DNA of 64,000 nucleotides, taken from IMG/VR virus record IMGVR_UViG_3300030202_003189, positions 124,001 through 188,000 of that record; one strand, written 5' to 3'. Each line of letters starts with the position of its first letter. Positions within the stretch are counted from its first letter, which is position 1. Shown piece by piece: positions 7,632 to 23,256 of the stretch. Made by a program: the position numbers and the translations under genes. The notes below the pieces were generated by a model, which had not been told where the DNA came from, did no database searches, and worked only from the letters and a program-made list of their open reading frames with translations.

Positions 7632-10600
7632 ATGGGAATTAATATAGATAATACAGTAATTAATGGAGTTTCACAAGCAACCACAACTGCTGAACTAAGA
7701 GAGTGGTTACTAAATAGAAATTTACCTAATGTTATAACAGAAGCTGGGTTTCAACAGAATGTACAAATGCTTCAAGAAGCCTCACTGTTATTTGAAGAAA
7801 CCAACCAAGGATTTCTCCAATCACTAGTTGTTGGGAATGAGTTTTATCAGACTGGTGCGTATTATAGCGCTGGGGTTAATTACGGTATGTTAAATGGGCC
7901 ACAATATTCTATTGATAATCTAGGTGAGATTAATATTGATACAACTACAGACTCATCTGGAAATTTAATGCCACACATCTCTTGTGAATTACCAGACTAT
8001 ATCTTTCCTATAGAATCGAGTTCACTATGTGAAATAAATTTATTTAGTGCAGAATTAGAATATACCGCTAATAATCTAGATTATTATGAAATACCAACAT
8101 CAGATGGGACACCAATATCAGAAACATATAACCCAGAGTCATTTGGGGTTTTACCACCATTTAATATGGCTAGAACATCTAGTGATTTTAGTGTTCTTGC
8201 TCAGTATGGTGAAGGAGTGGATAGTCTAGTTAAAAAGACACAGAATCAAAACCCGGCGAATAACCCATATTCTTGGTTCAATTCAAATCCGACAATGTAC
8301 GACTTATTCATTTCACCTAATTTTGATGGTAATTTTATGAGATTCGATTCAACAGCTTTAGAATTATCACCATTAGATAATAGATTCTATGGGTTAAAAA
8401 TTAGTCAAAGGGGATTTGAATTTAATAATGCTTCAGCACCTGATGGTTCAGGAGTTAAAACTTTCTATACACCTTTACAACCATATAATGATGGTTTCTC
8501 TGATGCTCCGTCTACTTTAATACAAAATACTAGAATATTAGAACAATGGGTTCTTGGTTCTTATGGTACTAGAATAGTTAGAGACGCTCATTTATTAAGA
8601 AATTCATTCACATCCTGTGACATGTATCTTAGTAATAGTCCTGGACTTCCTGGTATTGATTCTATCGAAGGAACAGTAGGATTAAATAATTACTATTTAA
8701 CTTTGGCTTGGGTGTTATCAGGCCCAAGAAAACCGAAATCAAACACTAACTACTTTGTACAACAACTAACCGCGTCTCAAATGGACCCTACAGCTCTTGC
8801 TGGAGGACTTGGGGAGGCGGTTATTGACCAAGATTTTGGGTGGGATAGGGCATTAATACCTGATTTTGCTGCACTACCAACAGCTCGAAAAATAGAAAGT
8901 GGTGCTAGATGGCAACCACAAAGAACTATTAGTAACTTTGAATTAATGGAAGAAGTAGGGACTAAAGGAATATTAAACTATACCCAACGAATAATTAATA
9001 ACTCCACTGATGGTGCACAAGGGGTAGTAAAAGTCGGTGATTATATTAGACAGGACACGAAATACATTAAAACAAAAAATGGACCAATTAGTAGAGGTTC
9101 AGGGGTAGACTCACTTAAAAATAGTGGTCAGAAACCATTTTATAGAAGTTGGATTAGAGCAAAGAAAGAAGAAGTAGTACAAGGAGGTGAAGACGGATCA
9201 CTTCCATTAAATTATTCAAGGTACGATGCTTTAATAAGACACCAAGGATTAGTCCTAGGAGGTAATCGTTCTACTTGGAGTGGAGGAGCAAGTGTAATCG
9301 AGGAAACTGGAGGGGCACATAATGCTCAATCAGGACCTACAGATACAAAAAGATTCATGTTTTCACTTGAAAATTTAGCGTGGAAGGATGATAATGACAG
9401 TCTTTCACCCCATGAAATAGGTCCAAATAAAGGTAGGATAATGTGGTTCCCACCTTATATTGAAAGTTGGACTGAAAACTCAAGTGCAAACTGGACACAG
9501 ACAGATATTTTAGGTAGGGTTGAACCTATTTTTACTTATAAAAATTCGTTTAGACAAACTAACCTTAACTTTATGGTTGTAACTGACTATCCAGAAGTAT
9601 TAGATACAATAAGTAAGGATTTTTCACCAACTAATTCTGATATGGAGGCTGCTCAGTTCTTCTCAGGAGAAGATTTTGATAGATATAGAGACGCAATTGT
9701 TTCAGGTAAAACAATGGGAGGTAACTCACAATTCTTTGAAGATGTTGGTGCTGTAAAATTAAAACCTGCTAGTGATTTTTTAACTGATGTAGGGGAAAGT
9801 GTGCCGAATGGTTTTGATACTGAGGAAATAACACTTTATTATTTTAGTGGATGTTCACAAATGAATTCAGTAGGTACTGAGGTGTGGCCATATACAGATA
9901 CAGAACCTGCTTGTACAAATTGTGGAGAACTTTGGGAAGGGCAGTATGATAAAACAACTGAAGCAGATGCGTATTCAACACGAGGGGGAGATGTGAAACT
10001 TGGAGCTAAAAATAAACTACAAGAACTTGCTGAGTGGTTAGTTACCGAACAAGGAAAGAGATATAAAATTCAAATTCAATACTATAGAGGTCCAATACAG
10101 GAAGATATGGGGGATGACTTCCATCACATACCTGTTCCTGGTAATCATGGAGTTCCTTTTGAGGGAGAAGGTGAAGGGATTGAGGTAGTAAATTCTTTAT
10201 CTGAAGAGGCAGTATCTCTTATAAATAAAGACTATGTAACGTGTGGACCAAGTAGAGGATTAAAGGCAGCGGATTTATTACAGGGTTTAATGAGTACGTA
10301 TGAAGAGGCTAATTTAGAAGAATTATTAACAACTAGAAATGATAGTTGGTATATGGAAGACGCCCCAGAAGATGGTAGATGGGAAGTAACATATGGTGGG
10401 GCAGCACCATATGATGAGATAATTTTAGAAAAAGATAATAACTCTACAGTAACTAATGTTGTTGATGCGGATTATGTTGTACCATATCCGGGGTATATCC
10501 AAGCCTTACCTATAACATTGAAAGTGATACTTAATCCAGAGTTAACGAGTCAAGACGCTAAGGATGAGGCTCAAGCAACATTCGAGGCTGAGAAGGCTAC

Positions 10601-12230: not shown

Positions 12231-15200
12231 ATGGGTGTAAATTTAATTGATCCGAATGAAGAGATAAGAAAATATGTTGGTGGAGGCGCTGACCTGCAAT
12301 TCCCTGGTAATAATAATGCGGGTTCGGTAACAGTACCCCCAGAAGATTTAGTACCCTATGCTAATTTAAGAGTTATTCTTCCGGGAAGAAGTGTAATAGT
12401 TGATAATGTTGCTGACCAAGTCCAAAATCAAGCAGAGATAGGGTTTATAGTACCATCTAAATTACCTCCTGAAAATAAAGGAAAAATGGGAACATCATGG
12501 ACTGAGATAGGAGGATTATCAGGATTCATGAAAGAGAAAGATGGATCGTATACGGTTGATGGATTAGGGAATCTCCAAAGAGAAGGGACATGGGGTGAAA
12601 CATTTGGAATAACAGACATCTCAGTTAAACTTAATGCGTCTTTTGAACCCCAAGTATTCATTAGTTTTGTTGATATTAGAGGTGCTTCCCTAATGGAACC
12701 AGGACTAAATTCTCCATACGCCGCATTTTTCCATATGCCATACCCATTATTTACTTTAGACCTAAAAGGGTATTACGGTAAAGGGATTAGCTATAAACTA
12801 CACCTAATGAAATTCAATTCAAAGTTTGATGCAGAAACAGGGAATTTTATTATTAACTGTGAATTTATTGGGTTTACGTTTACCTATCTTGCGGATTTGG
12901 CTGCAATATACTCAGATGTTGGTCCAGATCTTTATGGGCAATACGTTACTTCAGATCCTAACTATTTCCAACAAATAGGTAATGCAGGTAGTGGTTCTGG
13001 GAAACCGTGGCCAGAAGGTACAATGACTTTAGGTCCATATCTTAATAATATTGCTGACATGGCAGCAAAAATGGAGGCAATAGAGAATGATGAGGTTGTC
13101 CAAGACCACAAAGATATGGTTGATGCTGTCACATCATTAAAAGCGGTTATTGCATATTGGAAAGGTACCACTGTTAATAATATACGAAAAGATGGTAGTG
13201 ATGATATATACACTTATGACCCACATAATGAAACGTTAACTGTAACTGAATGTCTTTCTGCTAGTACAAAAACTTTATTAGCTGATTTGGAGTGTAAAAA
13301 GAAAAGAGCCGCCAATCAGAATGGATATTATCATGATCTTCTATTAACAATTAAAGGGTATGCAGACAAAACTAATAATAATCCAGATGTGGAAAAAGTC
13401 TTAGTAGAAAAAGCGTCAGGAGCCTATCGACCATATGCTACCTCTGTTTTCGCGTCCATACCTGATGGTGCAAAGACTAAAATAAATGGTCCCGAAGGGG
13501 CTCCATTACCAGCAGTTAGTCTAATAAAAACAAAATTCGATGGACCTGTCAAATGGGATCACGATTATAATCCTAATACTCCCGATGCTTATGGTGACGA
13601 TGGTGGTAATAAGGGTGGGGCGGTAATCTTATCAGATTATGATGACTCAACCGCCGATGCTGGGACTGGTGCTAATGGATGTGTTCAAGTTATTGCTAAG
13701 GAATTTTTAGATGGGGCAAAGGAGTCATTAGCATTTGCAGAAATGCGATTAGTAGAACTCGCTAAAGAGAAAAAGATACAAGAAGAAACTGTTAGATTGA
13801 ATTCATTGGTTATGCCCCCTACTTTGGAGAATGTATTTAAGTTAATATTGAATGGAGTGGATGGTTTTAATTCAACAGTAACTAATGTAGGTAAAATGGC
13901 AAATAAACAACATCAGGATGACGGGCGTTTAAGGGCTAAGTTAAGAGAATCAGGTACAGGAACAGACATTAAAGAAAATCAAAAACAAGTTTTTCCTTTT
14001 CCATTAGTATATAAAACGGTAACTCAGGGAACAAGTTCAACAACGAACGACTCAGACGCAACACTTAGGACAGTAAAAATATTTCCAGGTGAAAAAAATG
14101 CAGGTGGTGGTGAGTACACTTATCCAGATTATACAACTGATCCCTTTAAGTGGCCAGAGATTACTCTTGTTGAAAGATTGATACATACATTAATTGAAAA
14201 AACACGTCAAATAAATAGTACATTTAGTGAGGAAGAAGGATTTAGTGATGACGCTGGATATGTTGCTGCGACTGTTGAAGAAACACCACCTTCAGGTAAT
14301 CCATATGGAAAATTAACAGATGTTGATAAACAAATTATTCCATTAGTAATGTTAAGAACTATGTTACGATTAGGTAATTCTAATCTACTTAATAGTTCTG
14401 GTTATGGATCTATAGGTAAACAATTAGGAAATTTTACGAATATGGATATGTCGGATGCGACTGGAACGTATTCTTGGTATAACGCTCATAACTATTCGGA
14501 AACTGGTGACAATGAACTCATTACGGAACTAGGTAGGATGGAGGGAGAAACACTAATTCAAGGTATAGAAGACGATGCAACAAACGTCCGACTCGATGCT
14601 CTATATACAAAATTAACAGGAAATGCTGTTACTCAACAGGTTCCTAGCGGAACTAAGGGAAGATCAAAAGCTTGGCAGTTATATAAAGAAGCTGGGTATG
14701 ACACAAGGGGTTCGGGAATTAGTTGTGTGAGTACCGCATCAGATGCACAGAAGGAAGATACAGTGGGATGTCATTACATGTTTACCAATTTTGGTAACAA
14801 CACCCCAGTACAACAAGATGGAGCAACAGGAACAATTTTAGCAGGAACTTACAGTTTCTATGGGTGTAATTATAAAAATCAGAGTGGAGAACAGATTCTA
14901 AATGACTATGGGTATTATTTACCAAATGTAGAGGTAGAATTAAGTGGAGATATAAATTATGATCCATGTGTAACTCCAGAAACAAATAGTGGAGCGAGTG
15001 TATGTCCAGATTTTTGGATAACAGGAGTTGGGAGTAGTAATAACTTGGTGAGTTCTGTAGAAATATCAGGAGGATTATCAGAAGCGGTTCAAAACTACTA
15101 TGGTTTTAATACTCGTGCATTTGGAGGGAACCCAAAATTTACATCAGATATATGGATGATGATGGCACTCACAGGTGATATGACTAGTGCGACGGAGTAT

Positions 15201-18200
15201 GGTGGAGGTGATGACTCAATCAAGAAAACCGGACATTTCAAAACACCAAAATATATATTAGGAAAATACGGTACAGTTGATTATAATTGGGATAAATGGG
15301 GGAATTGGGACTGGTTCTCATACTACAATCCAATTATTGCTGATGGAAAAATCTCCCAAGGAGATACTAACAGTGAAGACAAGAGCACTTATATGAAACC
15401 TGATCAGTTTAGTCCTCTGGCGGTTTTCTACTCCGACGGAACAAAATACAGTGATAGATCATCAAACGAAGCACCATACACGGATGTGCAAACTTTTTTA
15501 TTAGAAGATGCTTTATGGATGAGAAATGACTGGGAAAATGAATTATATAGTAGTCAATTCCCTGTCATGCCTGCTGATCCTTTAATTACCGCATACACTA
15601 CGAGAGTGGAGTTAGATAATACTGATAAGAATTCTAAATTATATACTAGTGGTGCAGATACTGCAGGTTATCGTGAAGTCTTAAACGATAAGGCGTCTGG
15701 GGTGGCAGACCCAAGAGCGGCCAGTAATATAGCACTAGGTTACCTATATATAAATAATTGTGGTAAATACTTTAGTTTAAGTTATATGCACAGGGCCCGT
15801 GATAATAAACCATGGGACCAATTTAACTTAGGAAAATTATTACACAACTCAGGAGGATACCTTAAATTACCACAGTCTGTAATTCTTACCTTAGGGTCGT
15901 TATTATATCGTTATGATGAAACAAATGATATAATAGATTGGCCAAACTATTTTAATAGAACAGGGAAGGGGAATACGGATCTTAATGGTCATGATTGGGG
16001 GGTAAATACCGTCATGTATCAAATACCACGAAAAGATGAAAGACCAATGCCAGAACCTTACTTTAGACTCGGCGGAGGTATGACCCCAGACACCAGGAGA
16101 AAGTTTGCCGCTTCTCAAGACATAGAACAATGGCGAACCGCTGGTGACCTCAATAACACATTACACTTTTTGGCGGGTGGGTGTGTGACCTCTTATGGGG
16201 ATAAAATGACCTTTGGTAGTTGGTGTGGTGGTGGTGCACTTAGCCTTGCAAGCATAACAAACGCTACCGCTTTCCATTTCTACAATAACCTCACAAATTT
16301 TTTCTGTCCTGGATGTAACATTCATGACGATAAAGGCGACTTTCCTAACTACGGATTTTATGAGAAATTACCAGAATGGTTAATAAACGCCCCAAAATAC
16401 ATAAGAGAGAGACTTAAGACAGAATTTGTGTCATGGGCTACAGGCACCAATCAACACGATAAAGGACATTTTGAAATGCACCCTTCATTCCCAGAATTAA
16501 AGAGGTTAATGAAAGAAACCACAACAGTATTAGGTTGTGACCCTAATGAGAGTGGGTGTACTCCAGGTCTTAAATCCGATGATGGAAATGTGCAAATGGG
16601 CCCAACAACAGTAGGACCTAGTTATACAGAGAATATGGCCCCAGACAGTAGATTATATACTACTTTTTATAGTACCGGAGACTATTGGCTTCATAACAAC
16701 GACACTGGTTCTACAGACGAAAATGATATTAACAGAGGTATATGTACTATGTACACTGAACCGTGGGGTGCTGTTCATCCATATTTTATGACAGGTCATG
16801 CATCCAATAAAGCAAAAACTTTTACGTCACGAGAAATGGAAGGACAACATCAAAAAACAGGTACTACTAAAAAGAAAACTCTCGTGATAAACTTCGTAAA
16901 TGCATTTTCAAATTTAAGGAGTTCTCAAAAAGGTACCACGAATTTTATACAGCGTAAGGGACCTGCAGACGTATCAAAGGCTGAATTTACCTATACATTA
17001 CCTTTATTATGGAATGGTTGGGTGAATATGAGATGGCAAGGTTCTGGGGAAGTACCTGATAAATACGGAACAGAAGGATTCTTTAATACCATAACAAAAG
17101 ATACAATAAAGAGTTATGAGGATTTACGAAAACACCACCAAGCTAAACACTCAAAGTCTCCAGGTTATGGTATTTATGAAACATGGGGAATGGCTAACGT
17201 ATATTACTATATTAGAAAAGCAAGTCACACGAGTAATGTAGTAGTAGGAAATGGTTTTAATAGGAAGTACATAAACAACTGGGATGGAATTGGGTCAATA
17301 GTAACAGCTTTTAATGATTCGATTCAGGGATTTAACCAAGTTGGAAATGAAGTTTATAAAAATATTCATTTTCAGAGTGAGGGGTGTGCGTTTAATTTTA
17401 ATCCTGGGACGGCTATGGGTAACCAAATACCAAGAAAAAGGTTTACTGCGGATCCTGCAGATGGAGACTGGGCATACTCCTATGAAATATATGAAGAAGC
17501 TGGACTAGGTGGAATTAATCAAGATACAGAAACATTTATTGGGGGAGGAGATGGAAACGGAGTTCAGTTCATTCCAAATTTTTACATACCTAAGATGCAA
17601 TACTTAGCAACAGCCAAAAATAACACCGCCGACTATGTTGCTAATGAATTATATATCCAAACCAAAGACTTCATGCAAAGAATAGTTGAAATAAAAAATC
17701 CTTCATGGAGATATTGGATGGGATGGAAAGAGAACGATAACTACGTAAACTCAGTATTTACAACTTCAACACACGCTGATAGGTTTTTTGGTGGATTTTT
17801 AGCTGCGATAAACGAATATCTCGCATCTCAAATTAAAAGTGGTGCACAACAGACGGCCCGAGTGGATAAATTGGATATATTAAACGATAACGACATTAAG
17901 TTAGATACTTATTTAACTGTTAAAAATCTACATGATAAATGGTTATGTGAACCACAACAATCGGCTAGAAATAATTTAACCACAGGAAATGCTAGAGAGG
18001 CTAGTAAAATTGGGTGGTTATTTGACCAATTTAGTTTTGTTGATAGGGCGTATAACGATATTAGACATAAATTTATTGACCCATCACCCCTCTTAAATCT
18101 TAAAAAGAATCCTAAAATGAGTTTATATACACTAATATATGACCTCATAGTACATAATCAATTTGAATTCTTCCCCTTACCTTCTAATATAGACTTTTCA

Positions 18201-20471
18201 CCAGAGGAGTTTAGACAGGCATTTACACCGTTTCTAACAGTTAATGAGAGAGACATGAATAAAAATCCTAGGTTCTATATTATGTATATGGGTGGTTTTT
18301 CAGATAGTCTTGATGTTGACAGCACAGATTACCAATATAGTAACGACGGATTTGATATTGATAATGAGTGTATAGATTGTCCAGCTGACTACTTCGGCGA
18401 AGAAATTTCTAAAAAATATGGTGATAGTTTAGTGTTCGGTCAACTATTGAGTGAGGGAAAAATGAAATGTGAGAGTGGTGAATGTGGTAGTGGTGATATT
18501 AAAAAAGCACCACAATTAGTACCACAAACTGGACATTGGGTATGTTGGAGTGAGGATGCGACAGGAGGTACATGTAAAGTTAGGACTCAGAATGTTACGG
18601 CTTTCAGAGTGGCCTTTGGACAAGATAACCAAAACTTCTTCAAGTCTGTTTCTCTAGATCAAGCAGAATTCCAAGAAACACAGGAATCGTTAGAACTGAT
18701 AGATGCTTTAGCAAAAGAAGAAGGTACTTCTAAGGATCCTATGTTAAAAGGACAAAACCTATTTAATGTATACCAAAAAAGAAGTTATACTTGTAGTGTA
18801 GATGCTTTCGGAATGATGAACATCCTACCTTTACAATACTTTCAACTAGATCAAGTCCCTATGTTTCATGGGGCGTACATTATAACAAATGTTGACCACA
18901 CCATCACACCAGGAGAGTTTCAAACAAATTTCAAAGGAACTAGAATATCACGTTCTGTTGTACCCTACGTATCCAATTTTATTACAAATACTCTTATTGT
19001 AGAGTCAGATAATCCAGAAATTAGTTATGGACAAGGTGATGTAAACTATACCGTTTTAGATGGAAATGTTGATAGGGTGGGTGTATGGATGGATAGTAAA
19101 GTTACTAACGCATCAATAAATAATTTTGTAGTCGGTGCGGGAGGTAATAGTGTGGGTATTGAACTAAATAGTAGTTGGCCTAATTATAAAAAGGATATTG
19201 GAAAAATCTCTCCAGTTAGTGGGAATAAAGTTACATGTGCGACAAAATATATGGGAGAAACATGGCATTGGCAACCAATTCATACAGGAACACAATATAG
19301 TCCAAATTCAAGATATTCATTAGATGAACTTAAAGAAGCGTGTGTTAAGTTAGCAAAAAAGAACGTTTTTATATTTATATGGTTATATTTTGTACCTACG
19401 AAATCTTATGTTGAGCCTATGTGTGGCGGAACAGGAATAGAAAGTTATGACCCTAAAAAAGATTGGGTTGATTGGGAGGCGAAAGGGGCTTCGGTACCAC
19501 CTAGTTTACCTCAGTTAGTGAAACAATTAAATGATGCTTGTAAGGCAGATTCTGAAGTTGGAAAAAATTGTATTGGTGCGGTAGAGTTTGATTTAGAGGC
19601 TCATTATACAAATACAAAATATGAAGGGAGTAATACTACGATGGTAGATGGGTGTTATACAGCGTGGAGGAATCAACAAGAGAATGTTTATGGATCTTAT
19701 AATAATGTTAAGAAAAAAGATTTGGCACTAAAAGTTATGGCAAAACTACGACAAGATTTACCATCTGATTGTCAAATAGGTATATCTACCATTATGAATA
19801 ATCCTGGTAAGGATGAAAAACTTAAATCAGAGATCAGAGATAACGATACTAACTATTGGAAAGGTGTGGTGTGTGCAGAATATGCATTACAATCAGACTA
19901 TGTTGCGGCTCAAGCATATTCTCACCCAAGATGTGAAGAAGGTAAAGATGAAATGTGTAAATCATGCACTTCAGATAATCAGTGTAGTGGAGACAATTTC
20001 TGTCAAGGAAGTCCTGATGGTATGTATGAGGGAGATAGACCTATGGGTAAAAGATTTTATACCAATAAAGTATGTCAAAGCCCTACATACAAGTGGGATG
20101 GATGGGCTGGTACAGGAGTTACTGGAAGACCTGGACTTTACGCTCGTTATGTTAAGGCCTTACAAGAGTCTACCTGGTTAGGTCACGACGCATCCTCAGG
20201 TAAACCAGAATTTGTTTGTGGTTTAGCAGGGTATGATAAGAAATGGAATAACCATACCCCTGCCGATGGGGCTACCGAAGATTGGAATGGATGTACCGAT
20301 GAGGTTGCTAATGGTATAAAAGCAAAAGAAGTAAGATATTGGTCATATCTTAATACTTTTAGTAATGGTGGTAAAGGAGGGGCAAGAGGAAGAATGGCAA
20401 ATCAAAATGGTGGAGATGGACTTTGGCCATACGGTTGGAGAGACTTTGTTAAGGCAAGAACAACCACATAA
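12231..20471 (+). CDS. Giant baseplate hub protein (gp27/gpD-like) with C-terminal GH18-like glycoside hydrolase domain
   Basis: N-terminal FGITDI.VK.N.SF.P.V.I.FVDIRG..L and PYPLF.L.LKGYYGK; hub C-terminal segment YTC.V...G...I.PLQYF.L..VPMF.GAY.IT.V.H.I.PG.F.T.F.G.R; last ~470 aa has AVEFDLE, DYVAAQAY, GLAGY, YWS. Confidence 0.7.
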   Translation: MGVNLIDPNEEIRKYVGGGADLQFPGNNNAGSVTVPPEDLVPYANLRVILPGRSVIVDNVADQVQNQAEIGFIVPSKLPPENKGKMGTSWTEIGGLSGFMKEKDGSYTVDGLGNLQREGTWGETFGITDISVKLNASFEPQVFISFVDIRGASLMEPGLNSPYAAFFHMPYPLFTLDLKGYYGKGISYKLHLMKFNSKFDAETGNFIINCEFIGFTFTYLADLAAIYSDVGPDLYGQYVTSDPNYFQQIGNAGSGSGKPWPEGTMTLGPYLNNIADMAAKMEAIENDEVVQDHKDMVDAVTSLKAVIAYWKGTTVNNIRKDGSDDIYTYDPHNETLTVTECLSASTKTLLADLECKKKRAANQNGYYHDLLLTIKGYADKTNNNPDVEKVLVEKASGAYRPYATSVFASIPDGAKTKINGPEGAPLPAVSLIKTKFDGPVKWDHDYNPNTPDAYGDDGGNKGGAVILSDYDDSTADAGTGANGCVQVIAKEFLDGAKESLAFAEMRLVELAKEKKIQEETVRLNSLVMPPTLENVFKLILNGVDGFNSTVTNVGKMANKQHQDDGRLRAKLRESGTGTDIKENQKQVFPFPLVYKTVTQGTSSTTNDSDATLRTVKIFPGEKNAGGGEYTYPDYTTDPFKWPEITLVERLIHTLIEKTRQINSTFSEEEGFSDDAGYVAATVEETPPSGNPYGKLTDVDKQIIPLVMLRTMLRLGNSNLLNSSGYGSIGKQLGNFTNMDMSDATGTYSWYNAHNYSETGDNELITELGRMEGETLIQGIEDDATNVRLDALYTKLTGNAVTQQVPSGTKGRSKAWQLYKEAGYDTRGSGISCVSTASDAQKEDTVGCHYMFTNFGNNTPVQQDGATGTILAGTYSFYGCNYKNQSGEQILNDYGYYLPNVEVELSGDINYDPCVTPETNSGASVCPDFWITGVGSSNNLVSSVEISGGLSEAVQNYYGFNTRAFGGNPKFTSDIWMMMALTGDMTSATEYGGGDDSIKKTGHFKTPKYILGKYGTVDYNWDKWGNWDWFSYYNPIIADGKISQGDTNSEDKSTYMKPDQFSPLAVFYSDGTKYSDRSSNEAPYTDVQTFLLEDALWMRNDWENELYSSQFPVMPADPLITAYTTRVELDNTDKNSKLYTSGADTAGYREVLNDKASGVADPRAASNIALGYLYINNCGKYFSLSYMHRARDNKPWDQFNLGKLLHNSGGYLKLPQSVILTLGSLLYRYDETNDIIDWPNYFNRTGKGNTDLNGHDWGVNTVMYQIPRKDERPMPEPYFRLGGGMTPDTRRKFAASQDIEQWRTAGDLNNTLHFLAGGCVTSYGDKMTFGSWCGGGALSLASITNATAFHFYNNLTNFFCPGCNIHDDKGDFPNYGFYEKLPEWLINAPKYIRERLKTEFVSWATGTNQHDKGHFEMHPSFPELKRLMKETTTVLGCDPNESGCTPGLKSDDGNVQMGPTTVGPSYTENMAPDSRLYTTFYSTGDYWLHNNDTGSTDENDINRGICTMYTEPWGAVHPYFMTGHASNKAKTFTSREMEGQHQKTGTTKKKTLVINFVNAFSNLRSSQKGTTNFIQRKGPADVSKAEFTYTLPLLWNGWVNMRWQGSGEVPDKYGTEGFFNTITKDTIKSYEDLRKHHQAKHSKSPGYGIYETWGMANVYYYIRKASHTSNVVVGNGFNRKYINNWDGIGSIVTAFNDSIQGFNQVGNEVYKNIHFQSEGCAFNFNPGTAMGNQIPRKRFTADPADGDWAYSYEIYEEAGLGGINQDTETFIGGGDGNGVQFIPNFYIPKMQYLATAKNNTADYVANELYIQTKDFMQRIVEIKNPSWRYWMGWKENDNYVNSVFTTSTHADRFFGGFLAAINEYLASQIKSGAQQTARVDKLDILNDNDIKLDTYLTVKNLHDKWLCEPQQSARNNLTTGNAREASKIGWLFDQFSFVDRAYNDIRHKFIDPSPLLNLKKNPKMSLYTLIYDLIVHNQFEFFPLPSNIDFSPEEFRQAFTPFLTVNERDMNKNPRFYIMYMGGFSDSLDVDSTDYQYSNDGFDIDNECIDCPADYFGEEISKKYGDSLVFGQLLSEGKMKCESGECGSGDIKKAPQLVPQTGHWVCWSEDATGGTCKVRTQNVTAFRVAFGQDNQNFFKSVSLDQAEFQETQESLELIDALAKEEGTSKDPMLKGQNLFNVYQKRSYTCSVDAFGMMNILPLQYFQLDQVPMFHGAYIITNVDHTITPGEFQTNFKGTRISRSVVPYVSNFITNTLIVESDNPEISYGQGDVNYTVLDGNVDRVGVWMDSKVTNASINNFVVGAGGNSVGIELNSSWPNYKKDIGKISPVSGNKVTCATKYMGETWHWQPIHTGTQYSPNSRYSLDELKEACVKLAKKNVFIFIWLYFVPTKSYVEPMCGGTGIESYDPKKDWVDWEAKGASVPPSLPQLVKQLNDACKADSEVGKNCIGAVEFDLEAHYTNTKYEGSNTTMVDGCYTAWRNQQENVYGSYNNVKKKDLALKVMAKLRQDLPSDCQIGISTIMNNPGKDEKLKSEIRDNDTNYWKGVVCAEYALQSDYVAAQAYSHPRCEEGKDEMCKSCTSDNQCSGDNFCQGSPDGMYEGDRPMGKRFYTNKVCQSPTYKWDGWAGTGVTGRPGLYARYVKALQESTWLGHDASSGKPEFVCGLAGYDKKWNNHTPADGATEDWNGCTDEVANGIKAKEVRYWSYLNTFSNGGKGGARGRMANQNGGDGLWPYGWRDFVKARTTT

Positions 20472-20534: not shown

Positions 20535-20954
20535 ATGAACAATAATATATCTAAATCCTCACTGGTTTGTACTTTTGTTGAACATAAATCCTTAGAAAAA
20601 ATATACTCTAATTTAGAAAAAGGATTTGGTGTTGATACAAATAAGGTCTTTATATTTAATATTGAGGATAAAGAAAAATACTTAATAACGTATAAGATTA
20701 ATTTAGATAACGAACAACGAAAAGACTTCAAAAGAAGAATGAAACGAACGTTTCCGATACATAAAAAAGGGAAAACATTTTTCACAATTAACGGACTTAA
20801 TAAACTAATAGAAAAAATATATAAATTAACCCCAGGGAACATAAACTATAAGGACTATCAAATAAACTGGAAAGATTATGACAACAAATTAATAATGATA
20901 AAGGAAAAAGAATTATATATTATTGATCTAGATAGAGTTTTCCTAGATAAGTAA
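20535..20954 (+). CDS. Hypothetical phage protein
   Basis: 139-aa ORF with its own upstream TATTTAT motif; LVCTF, IHKK..TFFTINGLNKLI, INW..Y.N. Confidence 0.7.
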   Translation: MNNNISKSSLVCTFVEHKSLEKIYSNLEKGFGVDTNKVFIFNIEDKEKYLITYKINLDNEQRKDFKRRMKRTFPIHKKGKTFFTINGLNKLIEKIYKLTPGNINYKDYQINWKDYDNKLIMIKEKELYIIDLDRVFLDK

Positions 20955-20961
20955 TATTTAT
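20954..20961 (+). promoter_or_regulatory. ATATTTAT motif (candidate phage promoter)
   Basis: 18 nt upstream of ATG 20980. Confidence 0.5.
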
Positions 20962-20979
20962 AGTAAAAGAATTAGTATC

Positions 20980-21192
20980 ATGAAAAAAGAAAACAAGATA
21001 ACAAACGATGCGATAAATGAATTTTTAGGTGACGATTTAACAGTAAATGTTAATAAAGAAGATTGTGTTGACCAAGAATGTAAATTAAAATCTAAGGACG
21101 GATTAATAGAATCAACTAAAGTTATAAATAAAAAAGTCATTGTAGAAGATGGTAGAGAATTATTAAGAGAAGTAACTTTTAAGCACGAGTAA
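20980..21192 (+). CDS. Small hypothetical protein
   Basis: 70 aa, CVDQEC..K.KDGLIE..K...EDGRELLRE; preceded by ATATTTAT. Confidence 0.7.
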   Translation: MKKENKITNDAINEFLGDDLTVNVNKEDCVDQECKLKSKDGLIESTKVINKKVIVEDGRELLREVTFKHE

Positions 21193-21194
21193 AA

Positions 21195-22025
21195 ATGAAA
21201 AAATCATTGAATGAAGAGTTGAAAAGACACATGCAAATCGTTAATTACGCTAATGGTTTAGATAATGTCATTGAAGAAAAATTTAAGGTTACCTTCCAAG
21301 AACAAGAACCGGAAACTGAACCTGAAGAAGTAGAGGGTGAAGCAGAGGATGCACCAGCCACACCACCTACCCCACCTACACCCGGAGCAACACCTCCAAC
21401 ACCAGCAGCAACAGGAACACCAAAGTCAGCAACAGGTGGAAAGAATCTTCCAGCTAAACCTGATTTATCAGGAGGTAATAGACCAGTTCCACCAGCACCA
21501 CCAGCAGCAGGAGCACCAGCAGGAGCACCAGAAGCAGGAGCGACAACACCTCCACCTCCACCACCACCAGCACCTGGACAGGATGTAGAGGTAGATGAAG
21601 ATGTTGAGGAGATAGATGTTACCGATTTAGTAAATAATACAGAAGAAGTGGGTGATACAGTTGATAAATTTGCTAAACAACTAACCGATATAGAATCTAG
21701 ATTCAGCGAACTATCTGGACAATTAAGTAAAATGGATATGGTATTCCAAAAGATTGATAATATAGAAATGGAGATAGAAAAAATGATACCACCAACACCA
21801 GTAGAAAAAATGGAACTAAGATCATTAGATAGTTTTCCTTATAATCAACGACTAGATGATTATTTTGACCAGAAGAAAGGAGAATATAAAAGATTACGTG
21901 GAGTTGATTTAGACGTTAAACCACAACAAGAAAAAGAATATACTTTAACTGTGGGAGACACAGAAGAATGGGATGACAACTCAATAGGGAAATCATTTAA
22001 TCCCGACTATGACGAAAATAACTAA
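21195..22025 (+). CDS. Acidic, Pro-rich coiled-coil protein; candidate head scaffold/core protein
   Basis: MKKSLNEELKR leader, Pro/Ala low-complexity tract, EEIDVTDLV, heptad region, PTPVEKMELRSLDSFPYN. Confidence 0.55.
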   Translation: MKKSLNEELKRHMQIVNYANGLDNVIEEKFKVTFQEQEPETEPEEVEGEAEDAPATPPTPPTPGATPPTPAATGTPKSATGGKNLPAKPDLSGGNRPVPPAPPAAGAPAGAPEAGATTPPPPPPPAPGQDVEVDEDVEEIDVTDLVNNTEEVGDTVDKFAKQLTDIESRFSELSGQLSKMDMVFQKIDNIEMEIEKMIPPTPVEKMELRSLDSFPYNQRLDDYFDQKKGEYKRLRGVDLDVKPQQEKEYTLTVGDTEEWDDNSIGKSFNPDYDENN

Positions 22026-22040
22026 AAAAAATTAAAAAAA

Positions 22041-22778
22041 ATGGCAAGAGTAATAAAATTAAAAGAATCAGATATCACTAAGATCGTTAAAAAAATATTA
22101 AAAGAAAGAAAATTTGAAATGCCTGATTTATCAGGATTACCACCGGACCACTATCCAGACTTTGATAATCCTTTTGGTGATGGAACGACATGGAACACTG
22201 GCGGAGGTGGTGGAGGAACTACATGGGGAGGTAATAAAGGAGATAAATCTAAAACACATCCAGGTAGACGTGATTATGAAGGAAATGGTGGTGTAGAAAT
22301 TACTTTTGAGACCATGAAGGAGGCTTTAGGTGATTGTAGAACTATGGATGATTGTTTAAGAGGGTATGAGGCTTTATATAATAGAGGTAAAAAAGGAAAA
22401 ATACAAGGTATGCCAACACCACAAGAAATGAGTATGAAGGTTATGGAAATTGAAGAATCAGATCCAGATCCATCTCCAGCTATGTTTATATGGCTTCTAG
22501 TTGGTACTGCGGTAGCTTTAGGTATTCGTTGGATAAATGGTACTAATCCATGGACATGGAATTCTGATGTAACATTAAAAGAAAATATAAATTTAGTAGG
22601 GAAGTCAAAATCAGGTATTAATATTTATGAGTTTGATTATATTAATAAAAAATACGGTAACGGAAGATATCGTGGAGTTATGGCACAAGAAGTACCATCA
22701 GCGTCTTTTGTTGGACCAGAAGGTACTTTAATGGTAGACTATTCAAAATTAGATGTACAATTTGAAGAATTAAATTAA
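22041..22778 (+). CDS. Protein with LKESD leader, predicted transmembrane helix and C-terminal peptidase S74 intramolecular chaperone domain
   Basis: SDVTLKENI (Ser/Lys dyad spacing) at 22563, IYEFDY, GVMAQEV, VDYSKL; hydrophobic AMFIWLLVGTAVALGIRW just before it. Confidence 0.8.
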   Translation: MARVIKLKESDITKIVKKILKERKFEMPDLSGLPPDHYPDFDNPFGDGTTWNTGGGGGGTTWGGNKGDKSKTHPGRRDYEGNGGVEITFETMKEALGDCRTMDDCLRGYEALYNRGKKGKIQGMPTPQEMSMKVMEIEESDPDPSPAMFIWLLVGTAVALGIRWINGTNPWTWNSDVTLKENINLVGKSKSGINIYEFDYINKKYGNGRYRGVMAQEVPSASFVGPEGTLMVDYSKLDVQFEELN

Positions 22779-22780
22779 CT

Positions 22781-23134
22781 ATGGCACGAATAATAAAATT
22801 AAGAGAATCAGATATCACTAATATTGTTAAGAAAATATTAATGGAAGAAAAAGGTAAGCGTAAGGATGATAAATGTCAGGAAATTAAAGTAAGGAGTGTT
22901 AAAGATGTTAAACGTTTATTAGGAAACGCTAAAACTATGGACGAGTTGGTTACTAACTATAAAAAATTATATAGTGGCCAATCTAATAAAAAAGGTATGC
23001 CAACACCAAAAGAAGTTATGGAGAGAAGTAAACAAATAACTGACGCAGGTCCTAAAGAACCAGTTATTGCGATGTTTTGGTGGATATTTGCCGTTGTTAT
23101 AGGTCTGATGATAATACTTTGTATCGATTGGTAA
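22781..23134 (+). CDS. Paralog of 22041..22778 lacking the S74 domain; C-terminal transmembrane helix
   Basis: 54 of the first 60 nt match the upstream gene; shares LG...TMD....Y..LY, GMPTP.E and AMF.W. Confidence 0.75.
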   Translation: MARIIKLRESDITNIVKKILMEEKGKRKDDKCQEIKVRSVKDVKRLLGNAKTMDELVTNYKKLYSGQSNKKGMPTPKEVMERSKQITDAGPKEPVIAMFWWIFAVVIGLMIILCIDW

Positions 23135-23174
23135 CACAAGATACTTGATACAAACAATAAAAAAGTATAATATT

Positions 23175-23204
23175 AACCCAACCCTAAAAAAGTTGGGTTT
23201 TTAT
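23175..23204 (+). terminator. Intrinsic terminator before the replication block
   Basis: AACCCAAC-N9-GTTGGGTT followed by TTTAT. Confidence 0.7.
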
Positions 23205-23216
23205 GTATACAGCATG

Positions 23217-23256
23217 TTTACTTTATAATATTTGTTTTGTATACTTAGTAAGTAAA
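23217..23256 (+). promoter_or_regulatory. Putative promoter for ssb-recA-exonuclease operon
   Basis: TTTACT (23217-22), 17-bp spacer, TATACT (23240-45), then TAGTAAGTAAA; near-copy at 2373-2411. Confidence 0.6.

Follow-up and report, generated by a model that had tools for sequence, protein, structure and literature searches.

A mini Peptidase_S74 module behind a membrane-type helix in tandem, leader-bearing proteins of an uncultured marine jumbo phage

Two small tandem genes of an uncultured marine phage, a T4-related jumbo myophage, encode paralogous proteins with a common N-terminal leader and a hydrophobic, membrane-type helix, and in the first of the two, the helix is followed by a minimal Peptidase_S74 (intramolecular-chaperone) module. 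The genes, here called open reading frames (ORFs) A and B, lie on the plus strand of a 64,000-nucleotide stretch, the window, that covers bases 124001-188000 of the linear 231,285-bp IMG/VR record IMGVR_UViG_3300030202_003189 (34% G+C; estimated 70% complete). Positions given without a prefix are those of the window, and those marked G000 are genome coordinates, G000 146041 and G000 146781 corresponding to window positions 22041 and 22781. S74 domains are the textbook chaperones of beta-helical fibres. We read A and B as precursors of small, virion-delivered proteins that insert into a membrane, the S74 module serving as a disposable, trimerising cap, and we give this reading a probability of roughly 45%.

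ORF A (22041-22778; 245 amino acids [aa]) consists of the leader, a Gly-rich linker, a helical core, the hydrophobic helix, a 10-aa aromatic linker and a 71-aa mini-S74. ORF B (22781-23134; 117 aa) starts two bases past the stop of A on the same strand, has the leader, core and hydrophobic helix and ends in ...CIDW; its orthologs in relatives bear the S74 that B lacks. That the two are tandem paralogs is evident from their alignment across leader, core and helix (BLASTP E 2e-17, 31% identity), and of the first 60 nt, 54 are identical and six differ. The leaders occupy aa 1-22 of each protein (22041-22106 in A, 22781-22846 in B); in A, hydrophobic-x stands before both of the invariant Glu residues, E9 and E22. 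The core LG..(R/K)TMD....Y..LY...GMPTP.E is found in both proteins (aa 89-140, 22305-22460 in A, in the form LG..RTMD....Y..LY...GMPTP.E; aa 43-78, 22907-23014 in B) and is conserved across 21 homologs; in A, three helices are predicted for it at low confidence. Before the core of A, a low-confidence, Gly/Pro-rich linker holds the motif GNKGDxSKTxPGxRDYEG (aa 64-83, 22230-22289), which is present twice in the relatives P0013-P0015 and P0089 and is not found in B.

The putative transmembrane helix of A (aa 146-164, 22476-22532) has an acidic/Pro flank before it and an aromatic belt of RW and PWTW after it, and that of B (aa 96-117, 23066-23131) forms the extreme C-terminus. In a 19-residue Kyte-Doolittle window, the helices score 1.87 in A, 2.82 in B and 2.06 in a third paralog, C (below), the usual transmembrane threshold on this scale being about 1.6. 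Across the family, hydrophobicity is kept while sequence is not, and the flanks are rich in Trp. The part of A before the S74 tail is small and helical or disordered; the low-confidence prediction shows helices and the hydrophobic helix, and no beta-helix or fibre stalk was found upstream of S74. Look-alikes of B in the ESM Atlas were uninformative.

The mini-S74 of A comprises aa 175-245 (22563-22775; 8.0 kDa), with a predicted scissile bond N174|S175 and a dyad of S175 and K180. For residues 175-221, the Pfam profile Peptidase_S74 (PF13884) scores 26 bits (E 1.2e-5), above its curated cut-off of 22, and in the genome scan, A reaches 28.3 bits; B has no such match. A cut at Ser175, the codon of which is at 22563, would free the 71 aa and leave a product of 19.3 kDa; the predicted mature A would end 10 residues past the helix, and B stops directly at it. 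None of 51 related tails deviates at the Ser, at the Asp that follows or at the Lys at Ser+5, and nearly all are 70-72 residues long. In MyRF, the dyad S587/K592 has been demonstrated by mutagenesis and equated with S911/K916 of endoNF, and the cut falls immediately before the Ser (PMC8326128); the spacing in A matches both dyads. Modelled alone with AlphaFold2 (AF2), the tail is compact, mostly beta and without a long helix (predicted local distance difference test [pLDDT] 92), and it resembles BFVD models named 'intramolecular chaperone auto-processing domain' (ICA) with TM-scores of 0.7-0.89 and probability 1.0. The tail sequence gave nothing meaningful against solved structures, either as a single sequence or as a profile. 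On these points, the earlier note on this DNA, made from the letters alone, has held up well: it had described tandem paralogs with a common leader, core and C-terminal hydrophobic helix, S74 on the first only, a membrane-type helix and no beta-helix before it and a cleavage at Ser that, as a prediction, would leave a product nearly co-terminal with B.

The architecture is widespread in metagenomic data. In a large protein search, 93 matches were found, and about 20 clusters, from several sources including JGI, ENA and Tara assemblies, have the full architecture of A at 47-83% identity. A protein identical to A is encoded on six contigs, and on a Tara contig, the gene order is kept (giant protein, 139, 70 and about 270 aa, A, B, gp32). 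At another locus of the genome, paralog C (G000 21328-21933; 201 aa) again joins the leader, core, hydrophobic helix and S74, with PF13884 scores that straddle the cut-off (21.1 bits, just below, in hmmscan; 22.9, just above, in the genome scan). A third S74 match of the genome is outside the window, in a 401-aa protein (G000 113587-114792) whose residues continue past the S74 region and which, judged by this layout, looks more like conventional fibre-type use. Among 50,697 cultured-phage records, tblastn did not find the N-terminal part of A, and queries with A, B and another leader protein gave matches to the S74 tail only or none at all. The record is a metagenomic contig and incomplete by estimate, and one could suspect a fusion created by assembly or gene calling, the one-off chimera that the note had itself raised. 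The identical protein on six contigs, the clusters from several sources, the synteny in independent assemblies and the second fusion in paralog C have already refuted this explanation, and we give it virtually no chance of being right.

Within this family, S74 comes and goes. On contigs L027/L028 and L029, whose synteny is identical to that of the window, both tandem genes carry S74, and in blastn comparison with relatives, the B of the window shows a clean indel and is without exactly the block of ~240 nt that encodes linker and S74: the helix aligns upstream, and the intergenic DNA aligns at 92% right after the stop. When the N-terminal parts of 31 family members are placed on a maximum-likelihood tree, S74 presence must change at least six times, with at least three of the changes forced by well-supported branches. 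The S74-less members B, P0020 and P0089, the last of them read on eight contigs, stop 0-10 residues short of the predicted cleavage Ser, which, as far as sequence can tell, is as expected if the mature products are equivalent. Moreover, the tail of A is 60-83% identical to the tails of unrelated small proteins and only 40% identical to that of paralog C, which indicates that the S74 module has been exchanged between genes. Taken together, the ends just before the Ser, the indel and the changes on the tree imply that the tail is dispensable for the mature protein, and such dispensability fits a self-removing chaperone. One could still picture the mini-S74 as a permanent C-terminal domain for trimerisation or binding that never cleaves: compared with characterised ICA domains, it has half the length and is without their C-terminal helices (PMC8326128), and no solved ICA structure was convincingly recovered. 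Yet the cleavage-motif Ser, Asp and Lys are invariant in the 51 sequences, tail conservation is very high, and orthologs that end just before the Ser speak for a mature function independent of the tail; a non-cleaving module thus appears very unlikely to us.

The second distinguishing element, the leader, has the consensus M-(A/K)-(R/K)-x-I-(K/R)-L-(K/T)-E-S-D-(I/L)-T-x-I-V-K-(K/R)-(I/V)-(I/L)-x-E, also written as MKKIIRLTESDLTRIVKRVIKE. Its invariant positions are M1, E9 and E22; L7 hardly varies, position 20 holds I, L, V or M, and conservation ends after E22. The two invariant Glu residues close two hydrophobic-x-Glu motifs. Other copies in the genome use different codons, and the constraint therefore acts on the protein. 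At least nine genes of the genome match a profile of the 24-26 N-terminal residues, and seven begin with the leader (G000 21328, 21962, 22356, 42032, 146041, 146781 and 225871); further sites are an internal one at G000 10357-10416 on the minus strand and a weak one at G000 206630. The leader-tagged ORF at G000 22356-23219 is Cys-rich and holds a run of N (X in translation), an assembly gap that makes its length and repeat structure uncertain. When 1.8 billion representatives were searched with the profile, 199 clusters matched at E <= 0.001; about 18 belong to the true family (E <= 1e-10), and most of the others, over 100, have only the leader in common and are otherwise unrelated proteins. 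One leader-bearing protein, of 467 aa (L009 18515-19918), looks DHH-phosphoesterase-like by eye, so the tag is also found on a possible enzyme.

More than 500 places in IMG/VR encode the leader, one 10.6-kb contig having six copies, and 17 other large viral records carry 4-14 copies each, often in arrays. Mini-S74 on small proteins is absent from these 17 leader-bearing jumbo records, and the fusion of leader, helix and S74 is therefore confined to the sub-lineage of the window. A prohead protease of the T4 gp21 type, Peptidase_S77, is encoded in the genome (E 5e-26; G000 67683-68372) and in 14 of the 17 records. The internal proteins of T4 are diverse and have only a capsid targeting sequence in common (PMC3012670), cleavage of T4 Alt takes place at ITE and LTE, and in SPN3US, the paralogous ejection proteins gp53 and gp54 have the same N-terminus, which includes two cleavage motifs (PMC5694885). 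By analogy with these, we consider the leader to be, most likely, a propeptide or a tag for incorporation into the virion and a candidate for capsid targeting, and its two hydrophobic-x-Glu motifs, along with a gp21-type protease in the lineage, lend circumstantial support to the head packaging that the earlier note had considered. A literature search with the leader motif strings turned up no description. Outside the window, the head-module genes at G000 69590-70366 and 70370-70795 have a common leader of their own, MNLxxNIKKxLRLLxE, and LL(T/N)E recurs in the N-termini at G000 17089, 17503, 23225, 38911 and 65442; from their sequence, these look like more protease-site propeptides.

We can thus sketch how the parts may work together. 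A would be made as a precursor in which the S74 cap aligns three chains in register right behind the hydrophobic helix and then cuts itself off at N174|S175 by means of the S175/K180 dyad, leaving a ~19-kDa product that ends about 10 residues past the helix. B and the natural S74-less members would reach the same end by a stop codon. In such a scheme, S74 would be a disposable assembly cap and no part of the working protein, which would explain why it is so easily gained and lost. The leader would steer the product into the particle and probably be trimmed after E9 or E22 by the gp21-type protease; the mature proteins would travel in the particle, and at infection, their helices would insert into the host membrane, for instance in the path of genome delivery. 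A bolder version makes the leader a lineage-wide address code for loading the capsid with the 4-14 hypervariable small proteins of each genome that are to be injected, and the mini-S74 a mobile, self-removing cap that allows a membrane-helix cargo to be made as a soluble, pre-trimerised precursor; once leader and cap are off, the trimer would be delivered to the host inner membrane, there to form or prime a conduit or to act as an effector; in this extended form, we consider the idea rather unlikely.

Several observations weigh against the reading of A and B as capped, virion-delivered membrane proteins. Regarding the cap, Foldseek with the tail model against the PDB recovered no solved ICA structure, only chance matches to kinase lobes; the ICA of MyRF (7dc3) is a weak structural match (Z 2.3); and the 71-aa tail has no C-terminal triple coiled coil, the main driver of trimerisation in MyRF (PMC8326128). 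The full-length AF2 monomer model of A is poor (pLDDT 45), and the charges flanking the helices of A and B yield no consistent topology. Nor is the module specific to membrane helices, given that just 22 of 60 unrelated mini-S74 proteins reach 1.0 or more for hydrophobicity before the Ser, scored as the best 15-residue Kyte-Doolittle window within the 35 preceding residues; the notion that mini-S74 generally stands behind hydrophobic segments is only partly true and was dropped. As for packaging, the leader is internal or occurs twice in some proteins, which would suit a structural module no less than a targeting signal, its co-occurrence with the protease may come from shared ancestry alone, and the genes beside the S77 protease carry another N-terminal leader.

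The same features could be arranged into a short fibre, in which the helix would be buried inside a short trimeric stalk, A would be a small fibre, whisker or decoration protein and the leader would be a common adaptor for docking onto the particle, like the conserved N-terminal anchors of exchangeable tailspikes. S74 classically folds the trimeric part directly before it, exchangeable fibres are known to combine a conserved N-terminus with a variable C-terminus, and A and B are near tail genes. A helix of 19-22 residues that is very hydrophobic, poorly conserved and flanked by Trp belts is, however, atypical of a soluble coiled coil; beyond the stalk, the mature protein would be left without a domain for receptor binding, B even ending within the helix; and leader-tagged proteins include putative enzymes and Cys-rich proteins. 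All in all, we find a short fibre distinctly unlikely. The elongated beta-rich trimeric shaft and distal receptor-binding domain of a tail fibre or tailspike are not seen in A: Pfam and PHROG show no fibre family besides the S74 tail, and the N-terminal part is small and helical or disordered.

The mini-S74 is by no means restricted to A. It forms the C-terminus of many small marine-phage proteins of 140-430 aa, with bodies that are Gly-rich, acidic or moderately hydrophobic, and two PHROG families match the tail of A at their own C-termini, PHROG 6121 ('virion structural protein', E 5e-11) and PHROG 4287 ('DNA ejection protein', E 3e-9). S74 on non-fibre virion proteins is therefore already catalogued, and to speak of an undescribed system, as the earlier note did, was too strong. 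In the 43-kb Rhizobium phage RHph_Y1_10, a small S74-tailed gene is just 5' of two genes annotated 'putative injection protein', and on Tara contigs, such genes are in or beside runs of large unannotated genes, in one case in a module with a P22-type portal. Our literature search found no study of S74 on non-fibre virion proteins, and 'Peptidase_S74' combined with 'ejection protein' gave nothing relevant; in the paper on the Bcep22-like phage JC1, small S74 proteins are merely labelled tail fibres.

The genes around A and B place them at the end of a tail module. Tail sheath, tail tube and baseplate hub genes open the window and are followed by proteins of 538, 867, 1424, 105 and 2746 aa, among which the 105-aa one has a weak match to a baseplate-wedge PHROG and the other four have no family match in Pfam or PHROG. 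The 2746-aa ORF (12231-20471), next after the 105-aa protein, has a Cys-rich C-terminal part and counterparts in relatives with the length held at 2725-2740 aa; it is probably a giant of the tail hub or tip. Three small genes (139, 70 and 276 aa; 20535-22025, plus strand) then lead up to A and B; they have no family match, and their order with A and B is kept in all close relatives. In the 276-aa protein (21195-22025), encoded directly 5' of A, a coiled coil is predicted and a long low-complexity stretch is rich in Pro, Ala and Thr; its gene is syntenic with A and B in every case. A and B are the final two genes of this co-directional string. Behind B, before the gp32-like gene, there is a hairpin with an 8-bp G+C-rich inner stem (23175-23182/23192-23199) and a U-run (23165-23210, plus strand; z = -3.6), in an intergenic region that is 92% identical in relatives; the consensus scan overlooked it because its loop is 9 nt. 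The hairpin with its U-run is a probable end of the transcription unit, and A and B therefore close the gene string begun by the tail genes. Genes like gp32 and RecA/UvsX come next, and on the syntenic contig L012, the genes that follow are called as a 5'-3' exonuclease and a DnaB helicase. The T4-type late promoter TATAAATA is not enriched in the window, and a sigma-70 promoter scan gave chance-level hits only. The earlier description of the pair as 'outside any tail-fibre context' is thus right in that no recognisable fibre or beta-helix adjoins it, and wrong in so far as the pair closes a tail and hub gene string; as a whole, judged from sequence, that first interpretation is partly supported.

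This setting bears on another explanation, by which A and B are tail-anchored inner-membrane proteins of the infected cell, active, for example, in superinfection exclusion, lysis timing or membrane-bound assembly, with S74 only aiding oligomerisation before insertion. A lone C-terminal helix without a signal peptide is the classic layout of such proteins, and B has nothing beyond its helix; matches to known structural proteins are absent throughout the family, which is found in different genomic contexts across phages. On the other hand, no lysin or holin was seen among the scanned neighbours of A and B, the sole M23 peptidase being ~96 kb away; the pair closes a tail and hub gene string; small S74-tailed proteins elsewhere are in structural or ejection modules; and a membrane role would leave unexplained why the leader is on many soluble, unrelated proteins, including the DHH-like one identified by eye. 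We regard this explanation as possible though unlikely. A holin or other direct lysis function was rejected for want of a lysin among the scanned neighbours and of a charged C-terminal tail in B, which ends at its helix.

Elsewhere, the genome, like a related 231-kb contig, encodes the type-IX-secretion sorting domain Por_Secre_tail, located at the C-terminal end of large phage proteins (G000 about 33-36.8 kb; L009 2217-5624). These genes indicate a Bacteroidota host, possibly with use of the host secretion system, and the phage probably infects a member of that phylum.

The interest of A as a candidate membrane-protein precursor is that it presents S74 as a minimal, optional and exchangeable cassette behind a membrane-type helix. 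If cleavage and trimerisation are true, the known use of the S74 autoprotease widens, and the mini-S74 would provide a compact natural tag with which trimeric hydrophobic helices can be made and released. The leader, for its part, defines a large, undescribed multigene family of marine jumbo phages with hallmarks of a capsid targeting sequence; should its role be confirmed, the repertoire of proteins injected by uncultured phages would become predictable from sequence alone.

Among known systems, the closest are the ICA/Peptidase_S74 domains of the K1F endosialidase, the L-shaped fibre pb1 of T5 and the neck appendage of GA-1, which are C-terminal as in A. With such fibre domains, A shares the PF13884 match, the Ser-Lys dyad at Ser+5 and, as modelled, a predicted fold like that of viral ICA models. 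Its module of 71 residues is, however, about half their size and without the C-terminal helical part; upstream, A has a hydrophobic helix in a protein of ~170 aa, whereas fibre ICA domains follow a triple beta-helix or fibre; and unlike those domains, S74 is gained and lost among close relatives of A. PHROG 6121 and 4287 have the same mini-S74 C-terminus, but the match is limited to the tail, and neither family has the leader, the core or the strongly hydrophobic helix seen in A and B.

For the leader, the parallels are the internal proteins and Alt of T4 and the ejection proteins of SPN3US and phiKZ, which, like the leader family, are diverse, fast-evolving small proteins with only an N-terminal leader conserved. 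The likeness to T4 and SPN3US extends to a leader that ends in hydrophobic-x-Glu, an encoded gp21-type protease and paralogs with near-identical N-termini. No sequence resemblance to the T4 capsid targeting sequence was noticed, a formal comparison not having been made, and in contrast to that sequence, the leader here has 22 residues and is at times internal. For the combination of cap and helix, the counterparts are the membrane-bound transcription factors MYRF/MrfA, which, like A, have an ICA domain and one membrane helix per chain and use the same dyad (PMC8326128, PMC3742443). In MYRF, the helix is behind the ICA and stays with it, and cleavage releases the soluble N-terminal part; in A, the order is the opposite, the helix coming before the Ser, and the predicted cut would release the ICA, the helix remaining part of the working protein.

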